Shown here: positions 1,574-54,644 of the stretch, piece by piece
How the letters are laid out: each line of letters opens with the position of its first letter
Position numbering within the stretch: position 1 is the first letter of the stretch
Source of the DNA: Guillardia theta CCMP2712
Taxonomy: Eukaryota; Protista; Cryptophyta
DNA: 64,000 nt
Direction: 5' to 3'
Assembly (NCBI RefSeq): GCF_000315625.1
Contig: NW_005434641.1
Span: 604,918 to 668,917 of the forward strand
Position numbers and translations under genes: made by a program
Notes under the pieces: model-generated
Seen by the model: only the letters and a program-made list of their open reading frames with translations
The model's database searches: none
What the model was told of the DNA's origin: nothing

Positions 1574-2891
1574 CAGCGGCGGTCGTGATGACGATGAGCG
1601 CGAGGAATGCGAAGGAGGAGGAGAGAAGAGAGAGCATGGCGACTGTACTGAGCGAGAAGAGCCTGATGCGCATCCTCCACGAGCGGGAGAGGGTCAGGAA
1701 GCAGCTCAAGTCAACTCTAGGCAGCATCTTTGACGGTGAAGGAGCACGGGGAGGGGACAGAGAGGAGAGGGCGAAGAATGTGCATCCTGTTATGCCAGAG
1801 GAAACGAGCGGAGGAAGAGGCAGGGGCAGGGGAACAACGGCGCAAGACATCCCTCGCTTCATGAGGAAGGCATACAGTGACGTGGAAAGGCGAGGGAAAG
1901 GAAGGGAAGAGCCGAGAGCTAGAGAGACTTGGCAGGGGATGAGGAAGGACTGGAAACCCTTCGATCCTTCCAAGAGTCTCGCAGAGCAACAGAATCTGTC
2001 AGGGAACCAAGTCATCAGCAGCATGATGAAAGCTCCATCTGCCAGCGGCAGCACGCCGGTAAGAGGCATACAAGGCAGCAAGGGAGCCAAAGAGGGAGCA
2101 CATGAGAAGGTGTGCCTCTCTCTTGCGATCTTTCACCTTCTGCTCAAACTGCATGCACAACTGTCGTCTTCGCCTTCTGTAACATTCCTCTTCCTCTTCT
2201 CCTACAGAGTGCCAACGCTGCTAGCGACGGGTGTTCCTCGGACTGGTTCGCCCACCCTCTCGATTGTATCCGCAAGGCCTACCATGGAAGGATGAAGGGG
2301 ACGAAGTTTGAGCGTGTGGGAAGGTGAGGAGGAGCATGCATCCTGTTTGTGCTGAGACTGTGCCAGTGCCCCCTCCTCCTCGACCTCAGCTGAAGGCCTG
2401 ACACAGGAGAGAGAAAAGGTAGCGCGTGAAGTAGCCCAGGGCATGTTGAGGTGAGAGGAGGAGAGGAGCAGGGCAGTAGAGCGCGTGATATCTGTGTGCC
2501 AGCGGCACCATCCGAGTCCCAGAGCACAGCAAACTCGCTGCTTCCATCCAGCGAGCACGCGAGGCGCTGGACGAGAAGCTAGCGGCTGAGGCCAAGGACG
2601 TGAAACCTCCTGAGGTAGCGTCGGTCACGACGAGGAGGAAGGAGGCACACGGCAAGAAAGCTTCCTCCTCCCCTCGGAACCACGGAGGCTCCAGGGAGAC
2701 GGCCGATCCTCTTCAAGATGCTGCTGTGGCTACTCCAACGTCCTCTCGGGCCCCTCCCCGTCGGAAACTATCGGCAGGGCAGCTGCTGAGCATCGTGCGT
2801 TCAAGGGAGAGGAGAAGGCGCATGGTCAGCATGTTCAAGGAAAAGAAGGACATTGAAGATGCTGAGCAAGCATACAAGGAGGGAGAGGTCC

Positions 2892-2956
<65 letters not shown>

Positions 2957-4065
2957 CGCTCTTCTCTCGCTCGTTCTTACCGAAAGTGTGTCAGCTCGCC
3001 GCGCAGGCCTACCAGAAGGGTCAGCTCGATGCGAGAGAATATGAGGCTGGGTTACAAGGTGCCCCTTCTAACCCTCCCCCTTGTCCAGCTGCTCTTCTGA
3101 TCTCCATCCTCAACTTTCCTCCGCTCCTTCCTCCCTTCCAGTGTCATCCTCCTCGTCTGCTCGCTCCCTTCGTCCCTTGCCAACCAAACATGGATTCTTG
3201 ACACGGATTGGTAGCGGGAAGGAAGTACGGCAAGCTTGCATCGGGGAACGACAACTCCTACGTAGTGCTGCCCCTGAAGCCGAGTGAGCACGAGCACGAG
3301 CACGAGCACGAGGAATTGATGGTGTGCAGGCGAAGCAGCGACAGCAAAGTTCATCCCTTCCCTCCTAACGCTGGCGGTTGCGGAGCAGCGGAGGATGCAG
3401 GTGAGAGAGATTGATGGGCAGCGACAGAGGGCTGAAGTCCGAGAGCAGCAGGAGAAGAAGCAGTGGGACGAAGAGAAGAAGCTAGCAACCTTGCACCAGG
3501 TCTGCCTCCTCCCAGCACTCAAACGCTGAAACTTGTCCAGCTTGCTTCCGCCGCACGCGAGAAGAGGATGGCGCTTGAGGAGGAGGTGCGGCCATCTCCT
3601 GATTCTCGTACGATTCTATCTCATCGCTTCCTGCCACCAGGCAGAAGCACAGCAGAAAGTAATCCGCGAGCTCCAAGCAGCAGCTGCGATGCGGAACAAG
3701 GGGATGCCGGCTAGTGTGCCGATGAAAGCAGAGGCTGAGCAGGACAGTGGGGCGAGCAGAAGGACCCGTTGGAGGTGACTGCGTCTCCCTCCTGATCCGC
3801 GCGTTGACAGACCGGGCAGGCTCTTCTGAAGGACAACACCTTCACTCCCCAGGGCTCCCTCCAGTTAGTTGCCAAGGTGACCGCCCATGCTCCCGATGTT
3901 TCTCATGCCCGAGTAGAACGCAGAGAGGATAGCCTTCGCCACGGCAGCCAGCAAGCTCTATCGGCAGAAGCTGTCGGTAAAGGACCGCTGCACTCCAGGC
4001 CTCTGACATTGAGCAGGAAAAAAGACCTCGCAAAGCTCCATGAAGACGAGAAGGGCGTTCACTGA
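1574..4065 (+). CDS. Multi-exon hypothetical charged/coiled-coil protein, 5' end in gap
   Basis: Open exons (e.g. SEKSLMRILHERERVRKQLK, RRRMVSMFKEKKDIEDAEQAYKEG, AQQKVIRELQ) separated by GT..AG introns; stop after DEKGVH. Confidence 0.55.
2892..2956. repeat. (CTGCTC)n microsatellite, intronic
   Basis: Direct reading. Confidence 0.9.
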
Positions 4066-12353: not shown

Positions 12354-15309
<2,956 letters not shown>

Positions 15310-49546: not shown

Positions 49547-50885
49547 TTACTTCTTCTTCTTTTCGGGCTCGGGCATCTTCATCTCAGTCAAGGCTGGAGG
49601 GCCCTCTTTCAGGTTGGTATACTGCAAACAAATCAGCGGAGGCAATTTGATCGCATCCTACTCCACACACCTGAACATCCGAATTGAGGACGCGTTCCAG
49701 GAATCGCTCCAAGGAGCTCTGAGACAATGCAGTATCATCCTTAGCAAATCGAGTTCTCTTGCCAGTACGAAGAACAGCAACCTAAAAAGAATAATGAATA
49801 GAAGTATGAGATCATCGTATTTTCCAACCTTGGCCCCATCAGTGGCCTCAATGTCCAGAGCTTTTACAAAAGCGCTCTCGCGATCCGAGTTGATCCACAT
49901 GAAGGCGAGTTTCACTTTCTCTCCAGAATGCTTGCTTTTTGTCGCCATCACAATGTCATAAACATTCTTGTCGAGCTTTCCATCTGCAGTTGCTTTGCTT
50001 GACACAATCACACACCAGGCATCGGCTCCGTAGCAAACGTCCTGAGCAGATAGAGAGGTAAGCTCAGGAATAGCCTCTGCAAGCCAAGGTTTCTTGAGAG
50101 CAAGCTCCTCATCAGCTGCATTGTTCTCCAGGGCAAAAGTTTCCTGATATTTGTTCAAGAATTCGAAAATCTCCCTCACTTCAAACTTGTCATCATACTT
50201 GATAGGTTTCTTCTGGCCAGGTTTGACAACAAGGATGGTGGGGAACTTAGAAACTTTGTATCTGCTCACAACTCCCTTCTCGTCCTTGTTCACAATGCCG
50301 AGAGTCATCTTGCCCTTGAGATCCACGCTCAATCCTCTCCACATGAGGGGAGTCTTGGGTTTGTCGGTGAACAAGAGGGCCTTGAACTTGCCAGCCTCCT
50401 TGTTGAGGAATGCATCAATGTTGTCAGCTGTGATCTTTTCAACAAAGTGGGTCATAAACTTCAATGCCCATGTGTACACAGCCTTGTCGTTTCTCTCTCC
50501 TGTGTACTCCGTGACACCAAACCCTCCAGGCGGGATCACTTTCAATGTAGGGAACGAAGTAACTGAATATTCATCGCAAATCTTCTTCTGCTTGCCGCAA
50601 TTGATGGCAGTAACCTTGATAATTCCACGAAGCTGTTTTGCGAGGCTGCAATAGTCCTTAGTGAAAGATTTCGCGTTGGCAGCGTCATCCTTGTAGAACT
50701 CGATGAGCTTGACATGATTCATCGAGTCGGGCTTCTTGATGTGAGTGTGAAAGTTGAGATTGTTCAGCTCCTCAACCAGGCATTCCTTGTCCTTGCCTTC
50801 TCTCCCGTACAGATCGGCAGAAGCCGGCATTGCTGCCGCAAGCAGCGCCGCCGCCAGGAGCAGATGAGTCGATCTCGCAGCCATG
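49547..50885 (-). CDS. Secretory thioredoxin-fold (PDI/PDIA6-like) protein lacking CxxC
   Basis: Signal peptide MAARSTHLLLAAALLAAAMPASA; LIEFYKDDAANAK..LRGIIKVTAINC..CDEYSVTSFPTLKV..YTGER; second domain KALLFTDK..YKVSKFPTILV; ends EPEKKKK*. Confidence 0.85.
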
Positions 50886-50889
50886 ACGC

Positions 50890-52100
50890 CTACCCTACCC
50901 AGACCCACGTGCGTTAAGTGGGGTTCGACAGACCCTTACACCCCTGAATCTACTATGCAAAAGACGGGTGCTCTTTCACTTAAACCCCGGACCCCTTCAG
51001 TTCCCTCGAACAGTTACAAGTGTGGAGGTAGCCCTGCAAGGCTCTCTGATTTATTAAGTGAGCTACTAGTAATAAGGACACATCCTTCAAGATCAGGATT
51101 CACAGCTGAGGCTCCCGACACTCCATCATGGGTGACGTCATAAAATAACGGTGATAACGGTCTTCTCGATCTTCTAGGACTGTGATTTTACCCTCATAAG
51201 TTCACTCAAAGTTAAGTTAAAAATAAGTACGAAGGCCGCCGGGCCTGAGCGACCCGGCCCGGTGAGTCACTGCCCGTGTGACATCCGCCGGACCGCCCCG
51301 GCGCGGCCGCCCGGGTTCAGAGGCCGACCGTCACAGAGTCACCGGTCACGGGGTGACGGTCCAAGCCGACTCCGGCGGCCCGGGTGGCGAGGTCTGATCA
51401 CTGAGAATCAGAAACTAAAAGCTGTGATTGCCGAACTTCGGAACTTCGGACTGAGTGCAATGCGACAATCATGGCAGTTTCTGGACGAGCAGAGAAGCAT
51501 ACTGATATCGAATGTTGCCCGGCCTGATTCGCTCCCAAAGCATAGTCACCAATCAGGTTGCTAAACTTCAGGCGGCAAGCCTCCAAAGTTCCGATTCAAC
51601 TTGGCAATGCACGCCGGTGTAGCGAAGTGGCACAACTTGATGATCAGGGAGGTTTATCAGGATGCCATGGCAAAGGACGGTACTAAACTGAAGAAGGGAA
51701 GATCTTGAACCCTCGGATGATCATCGTAATAGACTCCCGGGGCGGTCCGAGCCGCTCGGCCCGCGTTTCACGGTCACCGGGTGATCGGCCCCCGACTGTC
51801 CGATCCGGGACTCCGACGCCGTGGAGCCTCGGAGTCCAGTGAATGCGGCCCGGTAGCCCGGCCGCCGCGCACTGCACAGTGAGTCCGCTTGTCCGATCTC
51901 ACAGAGACGGTGAGTCACCGGGGCGGCCCGCGGCCAGGCCGGGCGGCCGGCGCGCCGTTCCCGGAAAGTCACCGTGGCGGCGTGACTCACGACGATCGGA
52001 CGGTGCAGGCTGATGAGCCTCCGCCTGACAAACTTGAAACTTGGCAACCGAAGTAATTGCCAAGCCTCGCGGCAGTGATTGTGATTAGTGAGGGTTGGCA
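50890..52100 (+). promoter_or_regulatory. Bipartite intergenic module with core ACTCAAAGTTAAGTTAAA at 51204-51221
   Basis: Short ACCC-rich stretch, then the core, then a CCGG/GAGTCAC-rich block. Confidence 0.55.
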
Positions 52101-52359
52101 CGCTATATAACGAGCATTGTTACATCAACGGTACAGTAATCGAACTGATCACTTCGAGGCTAGTCTGCAGAGGCAAACAAACTCTGAAAGTCGCTGTGTC
52201 AACAATGAAGCAGGATGTTGATTAACCAACAGGAGCTGAACAGATCTGAGGCATCCTCGTCTCCCGGCAAGGTGCATATTTTACAAGGTTTTTGTCATCT
52301 TGCATATGATCTTCGGTGGTAACGTATCGAGGACAATAAAGAAGATTTCAGACGAAGCC

Positions 52360-53918
52360 TCACGAGGTAGCCACACGCATCGCCCACGATCGTGAGGAAG
52401 GAGCATTTCTCACAGGATTGGCCTGCTTGCGATTGTTGGACTGCAAAAATGTTAAGTTACTGCAAAAGCAGCGGCTGCTGCACCTTAGGCTGGGGATGCG
52501 GGGAGAAGTCAGCGGAGATGGGAGGGAAGGACTTGAAGTCGATCTTCTGCAGCCCAGCAAACTCATAGAGCTTGCGCTTCCACATGCGGAGGTATCTAGA
52601 AGCTCTAATCAGTCTCATCCAGTTGCCAAAGTGAGGACATCACCCATCATATCTCCTCTTGCCACAGATCAGCGTGAGCTCGAGTACTCCTTCCTCCGTG
52701 ATGTATGGGAGCCCGATGATGTCCTGGAGCTGACGCCCAGAGAAACCTTGATCCATGAGGCGCTTGTAACCCTCCGTGTTCTTCCCTATGTCGATTTGCT
52801 TTTGGCGAGCTCGCAGCTTTGTTTCATCAATTTCGCCAAGTGGAAGGGCCTGCAAGTCTTCAGCAGTCTTGTCTCTGGTCCCAACTTTGCCTCCAGGGAT
52901 CTACGAAACAGCTTAAGAAACAAAGAAACGTGCTAGTCATCGCGTACCACATCTCTTCCACCAGTCGGCACGTACATCTTATTGGTCACATCATACTTGC
53001 AAGGAACTCTAGTTCTTTTGCCGGTGTCATCAACAATCTCTGCAAAGAAAGGGCTGATCCTGGCCTTCTTCCCGTTGTACGGATATTGGGAAGCTCCACC
53101 TCTCGGGTGATTCCTCTTCAAACCAGTCATCTGCAAAAAGGGTCAACGGCCTCGTCTTGAAAGCACCTATTCCTCTTGACCTCTCGCTCCGAGGGGGAGG
53201 AAGGCGTCCTTGCTTCCGTCTTCTTCTCAGAAGAGGGGCTGACCACTTCAGTGTCGGAAGGTGAAGGTTGTGCGGAATTCAGCACAGAAAGAGCTTGAGA
53301 GAGGTGGAGCTGCAGGGCACCCGGGGAGAAGATGAGGAATGATAGTCTATCAAGATCCTCGGTTGCCTCGAGAAACATCCCGGTGAGTTTGCCAGCAAGT
53401 TCGGGTTGCATGCGATAGATTTCTTGGTAGCTGAGAAATGTTGTCGTCATTTGTGTGGACAAACGTACAGCAAAATCTTACAGCGCATTTCCCACTCTCG
53501 ATTTCTTTTCGGTTTCCCCGCAGTTCTTTCATGCAATCAAGTCAGACAGTCATAGAAAAAGACGAACCAAGACGAACCAATACCTTCAGCTCTGATAGAA
53601 ATTGATTTAGCTTGCGATTTACGACATCACTGTCATCATCCCCTTCGTCACCGGATGATTCAAGCTTCTTTTCATTGCAAACTTTTTCCTGTTTCAGATG
53701 TCATTGAAACAATTGTAGAGAACCATGCGCATACTTTGTTGGGCGTTGGCTGTGCAGATGCAGTATCATTGTTCTGCTCGTCTCTGTCAAAGAAAGCTAG
53801 TCTTCCGGCAACCTAGCACAACTCAAATCCGAGTTTGACATGTACAAAGTCATTTCACCTCATTGGTAAGGCCCGAGGAGGCACTTTGATCCGGATCAAT
53901 TGCCACGATGCTGGACAT
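52360..53918 (-). CDS. SLBP: Histone-mRNA stem-loop binding protein (SLBP) homolog carrying an MLLE/PABC domain
   Basis: RBD: EIDETKLRARQKQIDIGKNTEGYKRL...GKRRYDG|YLRMWKRKLYEF. MLLE: KKSRVGNAL|YQEIYRMQPELAGKLTGMFLE...LQLHLSQALSVL. Introns 53431-53481, 53131-53180, 52901-52947 and 52596-52643 keep the frame. Confidence 0.85.
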
Positions 53919-54644
53919 TCTGACTAGTAGGAAGTTAGGGACGTATGTACAACCAAGGCATTTTTCTTGGTTTGAGCGAAGGAAGAGAAGACGATCTGAG
54001 GTGGTTGCATGGCAGTAAAGGGGGATAAAGGTACGAGCGGGGAGGATGCAAGTAAAACTACAAGGTAAAGAGTTGGATAAATGGTGAAGACAAGGTGGAA
54101 TGAGGAGGTGAGGGGATGAGGAGATGAAGGAGAGCTGCAGTAAGGAATGAAAAACAACGACAAAGAAATAGAGCAAATCAAGACCCAACATAGGACCACG
54201 CGAAGGGCAGAGGTTAAGTCAGAAGGTGAAGTGTGAAGAGCAGAGTTTCAGAAGACAGGAAAAGTTGCAGGGTTAAGGAAAGAGAGAAGATGAAGCTCGA
54301 GCAGCAGAGAGGACAATCAGGGAGGAGCTTACAGGGGACGGCAGGGGAAGGCAGGAGAGCAGGAGAAAGGGGAAGGCAGGAGAAAGCAAGGAAGGGGGAA
54401 ATCGTATGAGTACGGTACAGTACGGTACTATATTTGATATGGGAGCAGGAAAAGGTTTGTGGGATGATTCACGGGAGTGGAGACGGAGGACAAGAGGGGT
54501 GAGACAAATCGAGACATAACACCAATGATGAAAAGAAGAGGAAAAGAGGAGGGGCGGGGGCGGGGGAAGACGGTATGGGAAAGAAAATTGAGGGGAAGGG
54601 ACGAGAGGGGAAGGGAAGAGATGGGAAAAGAAGGGAAGGAAAGG

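Follow-up and report, generated by a model that had tools for sequence, protein, structure and literature searches.

Gene structure and transcripts

The window analyzed here is a 64,000-nucleotide (nt) stretch of the genome of the cryptophyte Guillardia theta CCMP2712 (assembly GCF_000315625.1, contig NW_005434641.1, forward-strand positions 604,918 to 668,917). On its minus strand, between positions 53918 and 52360, lies the gene GUITHDRAFT_108389, which encodes a 389-amino acid (aa) protein with an MLLE (PABC) domain of the poly(A)-binding protein (PABP) type placed N-terminal to a stem-loop binding protein (SLBP) RNA-binding domain. This MLLE-SLBP gene has nine exons (53918-53859, 53812-53735, 53688-53584, 53525-53482, 53430-53181, 53130-52948, 52900-52644, 52595-52484 and 52440-52360, the last including the stop codon) separated by eight GT-AG introns of 43-58 nt. 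When these introns are removed with a splicing script, one open reading frame (ORF) of 1170 nt runs from the ATG at 53918 to the TGA at 52362-52360.

A first-pass annotation of this DNA had listed four of the introns: intron 4 (53431..53481, 51 nt), which lies within the MLLE domain, intron 5 (53131..53180, 50 nt, GTCAAG..TGCAG, phase 0), which forms the junction between the MLLE and SLBP portions, intron 6 (52901..52947, 47 nt) and intron 7 (52596..52643, 48 nt), which lies within the SLBP RNA-binding domain. All four are bounded by GT..AG and keep one frame, but the list was incomplete. Introns 1 (53813..53858, 46 nt), 2 (53689..53734, 46 nt), 3 (53526..53583, 58 nt) and 8 (52441..52483, 43 nt) are also needed, because a model with only four introns leaves the 5' part of the gene full of stop codons and ends early at its 3' end. 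Intron 1 is the sole frame-preserving option at its position, and if intron 8 is kept the frame ends prematurely at ..LLLQ and a stop codon.

Contigs assembled from public sequencing runs, which are labelled as guessed RNA, were aligned to positions 51700-54600 of the window. The transcript is represented by a single contig of 1286 nt in run X2 and by one of 1119 nt in run X1, the two runs coming from different studies. All eight joints are seen in contigs of these two studies. The joints of introns 2, 3, 4, 6 and 7 are present in runs X1, X2 and X6, and those of introns 1 and 5 in X1 and X2; the joint of intron 8 (52484/52440) is present in X2, with X1 contributing a matching loose end only. 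Because eight GT-AG introns are precisely removed, the X1 and X2 contigs stem from spliced RNA. Both contigs cross the MLLE/SLBP joint (53181/53130), the junction that the first-pass annotation had singled out for comparison with RNA, and an alternative donor that it had named as refuting the fusion (AATAG/gtgc) is used in neither. A further run of raw RNA reads (X17) has only two reads on the locus.

The 3' untranslated region (UTR) extends at least over 52251..52359, as the X2 contig reaches 52251, and separate X1 contigs covering 52102-52442 carry the 3' transcript to approximately 52102. At the 5' end, the X1 contig stops near 53925 with nine letters (TGACCAGCC, plus strand) that match nothing in the window. 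A 5'-UTR intron or a leader is possible, because an AG with a CTAAC-like branch site stands just upstream of the ATG. A separate X2 contig aligns at 54318-54473.

The spliced product is letter-for-letter identical to a deposited protein (P0023; XP_005832918.1, EKX45938.1, UniProt L1JBM7). UniProt names this entry "PABC domain-containing protein". The architecture has been deposited as a hypothetical protein, and the fused model is already in public databases.

The MLLE domain

The MLLE domain occupies aa 80-146 (53280..53589, minus strand) and has a coding sequence that starts near the end of exon 3 and runs through exon 4 into exon 5, with introns 3 (53583-53526) and 4 (53481-53431) between these exons. 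Its conserved domain is PF00658: the whole protein scores 46.5 bits against a cut-off of 27 and covers profile positions 2-66 of 66, and a single exon alone is matched above the Pfam gathering score (E-value: 4e-9). In a phmmer search the domain matches the MLLE chains of PABPC1 and PABPC3 (E-values of about 1e-6). The MLLE signature reads KLTGMFLE, as compared to KITGMLLE in PABPC1, and an aromatic tyrosine aligns with the phenylalanine of the PABPC1 sequence ..ERLF...

In an AlphaFold2 model based on ten members of the family, MLLE helices are found at residues 85-103, 108-118, 122-129 and 132-148, together with an N-terminal helix at 65-81. The predicted local distance difference test (pLDDT) score of these helices is about 87-93; the N-terminus, linker and tail of the protein are modelled as disordered. 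Compared to PABP MLLE structures with Foldseek, the domain gives template modelling (TM) scores of 0.74-0.87 and root-mean-square deviations of 1.1-1.5 A.

G. theta also encodes a PABP of its own, whose canonical MLLE domain scores 91 bits within a 631-aa open frame at G000:C10. The two G. theta MLLE domains are 37% identical, and by sequence that of the fusion is a diverged paralogue of the PABP domain. The MLLE-SLBP protein is not itself a PABP because it has no RNA recognition motif (RRM): Pfam searches of the whole protein at E-values up to 1 identify only the MLLE and SLBP_RNA_bind domains. A third MLLE-like exon is found elsewhere in the genome (match at C86:119124-119243, within G000:C86:117624-120743; 32 bits, profile positions 19-57) and belongs to neither the PABP gene nor the MLLE-SLBP gene.

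The SLBP RNA-binding domain

The SLBP RNA-binding domain (RBD) occupies aa 263-338 (52559..52834, minus strand), with intron 7 (52643-52596) inside it. This domain belongs to PF15247. The whole protein scores 34.5 bits (cut-off: 27), such that both Pfam profiles proposed for this check in the first-pass annotation match the spliced protein above their cut-offs. Exon 7 alone scores 30.9 bits (E-value: 2.8e-7), above the gathering score. Both domain matches lie well outside what chance would give. When the 87-Mb G. theta genome is searched with PF15247, exactly one match is obtained, and this is the MLLE-SLBP gene.

Helix A of the domain is ARQKQIDIGKNTEGYKRL and the C-terminal helix is KRRYDGYLRMWKRKLYEF. 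By sequence, the domain matches PDB entries of both the Drosophila and the human SLBP RBD. In alignments to Drosophila SLBP (4tux/4tuw), ARQKQIDIGKNTEGYKRL and GKRRYDGYLRMWKRKLYE align to residues 6-72 of 4tux_A, and KRRYDGYLRMWKRKLYE forms the last RBD helix. The helix A motif RRQKQI.YGKNT..Y and the C-terminal helix motif SRR..D....W...L are both present, in columns that are invariant among ten family members. The retained RNA-contacting helices include RQKQI.GKNT..Y and a basic KRR plus WK..L..F.

The AlphaFold2 model has moderate confidence over this region (pLDDT of 62-82 for aa 263-340). Foldseek pairs the RBD with human and fly SLBP (TM scores of 0.66-0.74, with 4l8r_C and 4tuw_A both at 0.74; probabilities of 0.98-1.00). 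In the ESM Atlas, the structure row for the RBD is an SLBP cluster (TM score: 0.60); a query with the whole protein gives no usable feature match, and its structure rows have TM scores below 0.26. Contigs, Pfam profiles, alignments to solved structures and Foldseek thus agree on one spliced mRNA and one protein with the MLLE domain N-terminal to the SLBP domain. The MLLE and SLBP peptides quoted in the first-pass annotation are indeed encoded at this locus.

Other conserved regions and neighbouring genes

N-terminal to the RBD lies a region (aa 195-262; 52835..53085, minus strand, with intron 6 at 52947-52901 inside it) that is highly conserved in the alignment of ten family members. Its consensus is QYPYNGKKAR..PFFAEIVDD.GKRTRVPC.YD..KMYVPTGGRD..GKVGTRDKT.EDLQAL. 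The region has no Pfam match, and AlphaFold2 predicts short strands with low confidence (pLDDT of about 49-59). The sequence PFFAEIVDD was considered as an internal PAM2-like motif and rejected, as it lacks the Leu..Ala..Phe.Pro spacing. The C-terminal tail (aa 367-389; 52363..52431, minus strand) carries the family motifs RKQ..P.R and a terminal S/T-W-A in alignment A3; in one relative the tail motif is repeated beside an acidic run.

The window also contains long ORFs of ordinary neighbouring genes at 12360-13691 (plus strand) and 49658-50908 (minus strand); they encode a domain of the tubulin-tyrosine ligase family (220.6 bits) and thioredoxin or thioredoxin-like domains.

Conservation of the fusion

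Word-seeded and profile searches recovered about 30 relatives, nearly all of them exon fragments from metagenomes or run assemblies. Both Pfam domains are found in P0029, a relative with 58% identity, whose contig (L031) contains a single uninterrupted ORF that runs from the MLLE domain through the RBD. A second contig (L032) has an intron inside the MLLE domain, and its last MLLE helix (..SQAVAVL..) is in one exon with the SLBP half. In Baffinella frigidus and two ENA contigs, a distance of 0.5-1.7 kb separates an MLLE ORF from an SLBP ORF that follows it on the same strand. Introns are placed differently in different taxa, which shows that the fusion does not stem from an error in a single gene model. 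The length and type of the linker are also conserved in the family alignment.

The named members of the family are Guillardia, Hanusia and Baffinella, and the family looks narrow. When a representative library was searched with the 85-aa SLBP exon, 22 proteins were recovered, nearly all of which are fragments of one narrow family; this result is no evidence that other organisms lack the architecture. The profile search reached close relatives only. Full-text searches, whose coverage left out most subscription journals, found no literature on this architecture or on the histone tRNA-like element described below.

The first-pass annotation had considered the fusion easy to miss. This does not apply to G. 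theta, for which GenBank holds the exact 389-aa model, but it does apply to the related records, in which the gene is cut short or divided. For Hanusia phi, the EukProt model (P0001) begins at the methionine at the start of exon 6 and leaves the final intron in place. In Baffinella (GCA_026770585.1, MU646553.1:267833-277641; L161), an MLLE protein (198 aa) and a "partial" SLBP (157 aa) are annotated on one strand. Both public models are probably wrong, and the present analysis corrects these annotations.

The reading of the locus as one fused protein is opposed by two observations. First, a low-depth X6 contig (organism label B) keeps 53138-53180 of the junction intron as well as intron 3 (53526-53583), and splices intron 4. 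With the junction intron kept, translation meets a stop after 17 further codons, which gives a 196-aa MLLE-only product. Second, an SLBP-only product could be made by internal initiation because exon 6 opens with an ATG, and it is at this ATG that the Hanusia model begins; Baffinella, likewise, is annotated with two genes. The locus might then yield two separate products, with the fused ORF minor or non-functional. This alternative is very improbable. The junction is spliced in the full-length X1 and X2 contigs, which come from separate studies and have greater depth than X6. The junction intron is of phase 0, and family members share the length and type of the linker. The relatives represented by L031 and L032 cannot separate the domains by splicing because one has both in a single ORF and the other has the end of the MLLE domain and the SLBP half in one exon. 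The X6 retention could be pre-mRNA or an intron-retaining isoform. The gene probably encodes the cryptophyte SLBP; its product is a real, expressed protein that carries an MLLE domain.

The histone 3' hairpin and tRNA-like element

The first-pass annotation had proposed that the histone 3' UTRs of this organism be inspected for a stem-loop, and such an element is present in all five histone classes. Thirteen G. theta histone genes (H1-like, H2A, H2B, H3 and H4) have a conserved 3' hairpin with a GGUGU/ACACC stem. These hairpins (loci L020-L030, L183 and L188) are located at C4:579421-579483, C4:604889-604941, C16:144676-144725, C32:131587-131640, C32:218870, C39:335674-335728, C49:261131-261185, C79:400038-400093 and C89:232776, with four further copies on C14 near 380.6, 395.5, 396.4 and 438.6 kb. 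In nine H3, H2A and H2B genes, the hairpin reads (A)ACU-GGUGU(U)-NUUC-(R)ACACC followed by an AAAC-like sequence and falls within the first 25-112 nt past the stop codon. Two G-C pairs form the base of the stem and a U-A pair its top; the loop is U-rich and 4 nt long, and the flanks are rich in A and C. These features are shared with the animal histone hairpin.

A tRNA-like element begins 1-11 nt after the hairpin. This element comprises an acceptor stem of 7 bp, a hairpin resembling a D-arm that often contains ..TGGTG.., and a T-arm whose loop is TTCRANT. It has no anticodon arm, and for this reason ARAGORN predicts no tRNA at the histone loci. A pattern that combines the hairpin and T-arm has 11 matches in 87 Mb, as compared to 1 match for a reversed-pattern control, and each of the 11 copies is directly 3' of a histone gene, including genes for H4 and a lysine/alanine-rich H1-like protein. 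Two further H4 genes, in which the T-loop is a variant, are detected with a hairpin-only pattern; the remaining five matches of this pattern equal the control rate. One H2A gene (TAG stop; L018, G000:C1:746745-749993) has neither the hairpin nor the tRNA-like element, and it may encode a replication-independent variant with a polyadenylated mRNA.

The same arrangement is found in metagenomes. An ORF for H2A, H2B, H3 or H4 lies immediately upstream at 26 of 80 loci found by the pattern, and all ten loci that were fetched by H3 protein identity alone have both the hairpin and the tRNA-like element with its T-arm. Among these H3-fetched loci is a hairpin variant, AGUGU..ACACU, in which the first pair shows a compensatory change from G-C to A-U. 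The T-stem is 97.2% paired, with double changes at four of its five pairs; its covariation is 0.786, versus 0.209 in shuffled alignments (0 of 500 as high), and drops clearly in slid controls. RNAalifold recovers the hairpin and T-arm from a MAFFT alignment. In that alignment the 5' strands are out of register, so that the acceptor stem is missed; this stem was therefore tested by script against shuffles: the summed best pairs are 186, versus 164.5 +/- 3.7 in 500 shuffles (maximum: 175).

In position and shape, the hairpin resembles the histone stem-loop of animals. By sequence it falls outside Rfam family RF00032 (Histone3), whose model finds no match at E-values up to 10 in the genome, in 14 histone loci or in a 106-nt hairpin stretch; the hairpin was recognized by eye and by script. 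The Rfam negative counts against assigning the hairpin to the SLBP domain of the fusion, as does the divergence of the RBD. The PF15247 match is split into two stretches in the G. theta protein, and orthologues match profile positions 2-69 of 70 in one stretch. The TPNK loop is absent: GLPYITEEGVLELTL stands in its place with an insertion of 6-8 residues, and the region that reads HPRTPNK in animals reads GLPYITEEG in G. theta, with no TP dipeptide. In animal SLBPs, phosphorylation of the TPNK threonine raises RNA affinity; the loop is an animal feature and not a requirement of the Pfam family.

These findings, together with a whole-protein score of only 34.5 bits, would fit an SLBP-like domain that has been re-purposed to bind another RNA or none, a scenario already put forward for divergent paralogues of SLBP in other protists, with the hairpin read by another factor. 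Such re-purposing is unlikely, since the genome has no second PF15247 match and both RNA-contacting helix motifs are kept. Moreover, the protein family and the hairpin occur in the same lineage, and the hairpin resembles the animal element in its two basal G-C pairs, its 4-nt U-rich loop and its A/C-rich flanks. As the sole SLBP match, with both of these helices and this co-occurrence, the MLLE-SLBP protein is the prime candidate for the hairpin reader. Binding of the histone hairpin by its SLBP domain is quite likely on the basis of these sequence features.

The position of the tRNA-like element suggests how the histone mRNA 3' end may be formed. By analogy to MALAT1, in which RNase P cuts before a tRNA-like structure, cleavage by RNase P just before the element is reasonably probable. 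From sequence, the 3' end looks like one that is made by RNase P and independently of U7. A search for U7 itself gives a weak negative: the best match to RF00066 among the 65 scored of approximately 10,000 candidates has 21.1 bits (E-value: 1.15), which is no better than in bacterial controls.

PAM2 proteins as candidate MLLE partners

Classic PAM2 motifs are encoded in the G. theta genome, including KLLNVDAKEFVPSF, KLSVEAREFVPSF and FNPAAAEFVPSF. A PAIP1-like gene (L034, G000:C123:78129-81173) has two PAM2 motifs (C123:79629-79673) followed by a MIF4G domain, which gives Pfam scores of 45.8 and 66.3 bits and lies in ORFs at positions 1585-2508 and 2372-3043 of this locus. A Tob-like gene (L037, G000:C115:215632-218676) has the PAM2 motif TLNGLAPEFTPT (C115:217132-217176) followed by a BTG domain in the same frame (55.5 bits). 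A third PAM2 gene is located upstream of a protein kinase domain. Judged from their sequences, the PAIP1-like and Tob-like proteins are candidate partners of the MLLE domain. SLIP1, the adaptor that connects animal SLBP to the translation machinery, is a MIF4G protein, which makes the PAIP1-like gene of particular note.

Complex prediction for the MLLE domain (residues 60-152) and a 40-residue G. theta PAM2 peptide gave weak support, with a score of 0.38 as compared to 0.01 for the best control. Of 78 solved complexes, 51 attain the mark for this score, as do 2 of 108 mismatched pairs; at 0.60 or under, it is attained by only 5 of the 78 solved complexes and by all 4 of the mismatches that passed (of 180). 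The runs share at least 71% of contacts, with a partner pLDDT of at least 54. Because many MLLE-PAM2 complexes have been solved, the prediction may reflect those known structures and shows likeness rather than binding. Docking of PAM2 proteins by this MLLE is somewhat more likely than not.

The idea of the first-pass annotation that one protein binds the hairpin and recruits PAM2 partners is plausible because the genome has a sole SLBP gene, a hairpin in all five histone classes, an MLLE domain with the expected signature and genes encoding PAM2 motifs. What such recruitment would achieve is less certain. The MLLE domain might mainly bring in decay machinery (Tob-like/CCR4-NOT or PAN3) when DNA synthesis ends, rather than serve as a platform for translation. 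The Tob-like gene, with its PAM2 motif and BTG domain, would fit this role, and animal SLBP is needed for regulated decay of histone mRNA. Against it, the genome also has the PAIP1-like gene with PAM2 motifs and a MIF4G domain, and deadenylases would be without an obvious substrate on an mRNA that has no tail. A predominantly decay-directed MLLE is unlikely, and roles in translation and decay are not mutually exclusive. That the protein acts as a PABP surrogate in translation rather than in decay can be proposed tentatively, at somewhat less than even chances.

A model for histone mRNA 3' ends in G. theta

These components can be combined in the following model, which is the most probable account of the gene and is somewhat more likely than not. 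RNA polymerase II (Pol II) would transcribe the histone gene past its hairpin and tRNA-like element. RNase P would then cut just 5' of the acceptor stem, a few nt past the hairpin, leaving a non-polyadenylated mRNA end like that of MALAT1 after release of mascRNA. The SLBP domain would bind the hairpin, ACU-GGUGU(U)-4 nt-(A)ACACC with its A/C-rich 3' flank. The MLLE domain would dock PAM2 proteins at this 3' end, the same class of partner as on PABP-coated poly(A). Translation, termination and/or decay would in this way be linked to the histone 3' end in a manner that requires neither poly(A) nor PABP nor a SLIP1-type adaptor.

The complete scheme is a self-contained, U7-independent pathway, in which RNase P makes the end, one protein both reads the hairpin and mimics PABP, and the PAIP1-like MIF4G protein closes the translation loop. 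As a whole this scheme is less likely than not. If the loop is closed in this manner, the arrangement would be functionally convergent with the SLBP-SLIP1 (MIF4G) link of animals.

Comparison to known systems

Among the closest known systems is metazoan SLBP (human 4L8R/4QOZ; Drosophila 4TUX/4TUW). The G. theta protein shares with it the PF15247 family and the helix motifs and has a similar predicted fold, and in both cases replication-type histone genes of every class are closely followed by a hairpin. The G. theta protein differs in having an N-terminal MLLE domain, no TPNK phospho-loop and an 8-aa insertion in the RBD. The RNA elements differ as well: the animal hairpin is GGCUCU/AGAGCC and is followed by a purine-rich element that binds U7, whereas that of G. 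theta is GGUGU/ACACC and is followed by the tRNA-like element. A survey of SLBP evolution in a 2026 preprint (10.64898/2026.10.14.759114) reports that the SLIP1-binding motif is not found in any non-metazoan SLBP; cryptophytes, MLLE, tRNA and RNase P are unmentioned in it. On this basis, another adaptor mechanism is expected outside animals.

The MLLE domain of PABPC1 (PDB 3KUS, 3KUI and 3KTP) shares the PF00658 family, the five-helix fold and the signature with that of the fusion. In PABPC, four RRMs bind poly(A) and the MLLE domain is C-terminal, whereas in the fusion it is N-terminal to an SLBP domain. MLLE domains outside PABP are known from Ustilago maydis Rrm4 (8S6N/8S6O) and UBR5/HYD (1I2T, 3NTW), both of which are Foldseek matches of the G. 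theta domain. Rrm4, which works in endosomal mRNA transport, is similar in that its MLLE domains are joined to an RNA-binding module. This module consists of RRMs, and UBR5 is an E3 ligase; neither protein has an SLBP domain. The best structural match of the modelled MLLE domain is the complex of Leishmania PABP1 MLLE with the PAM2 motif of eIF4E4 (6H7A/6H7B; TM scores of 0.83-0.86). In some protists, as this complex shows, a contact between MLLE and PAM2 directly links a 3'-end binding protein to a cap-binding factor, but there the MLLE domain is part of a genuine PABP bound to poly(A).

The closest parallel for the RNA end is provided by MALAT1 and MEN-beta of vertebrates, with the tRNA-like mascRNA. 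These transcripts have an RNase P cut before a tRNA-like structure, a tail-less Pol II 3' end and a protecting structure upstream, all of which are proposed here for G. theta. They differ in that the upstream structure is a triple helix, while in G. theta it is an SLBP-type hairpin, the genes are coding histone genes and the tRNA-like element has no anticodon arm.

The presence of a hairpin and tRNA-like element on every histone class points to a 3'-end pathway built from general parts (RNase P and PAM2 proteins) rather than from the U7 small nuclear ribonucleoprotein. A natural fusion of SLBP and MLLE domains hints at how a non-animal SLBP could promote translation, and suggests that in these cryptophytes a hairpin and its SLBP could stand in for poly(A) and PABP by way of the same PAM2 partners.

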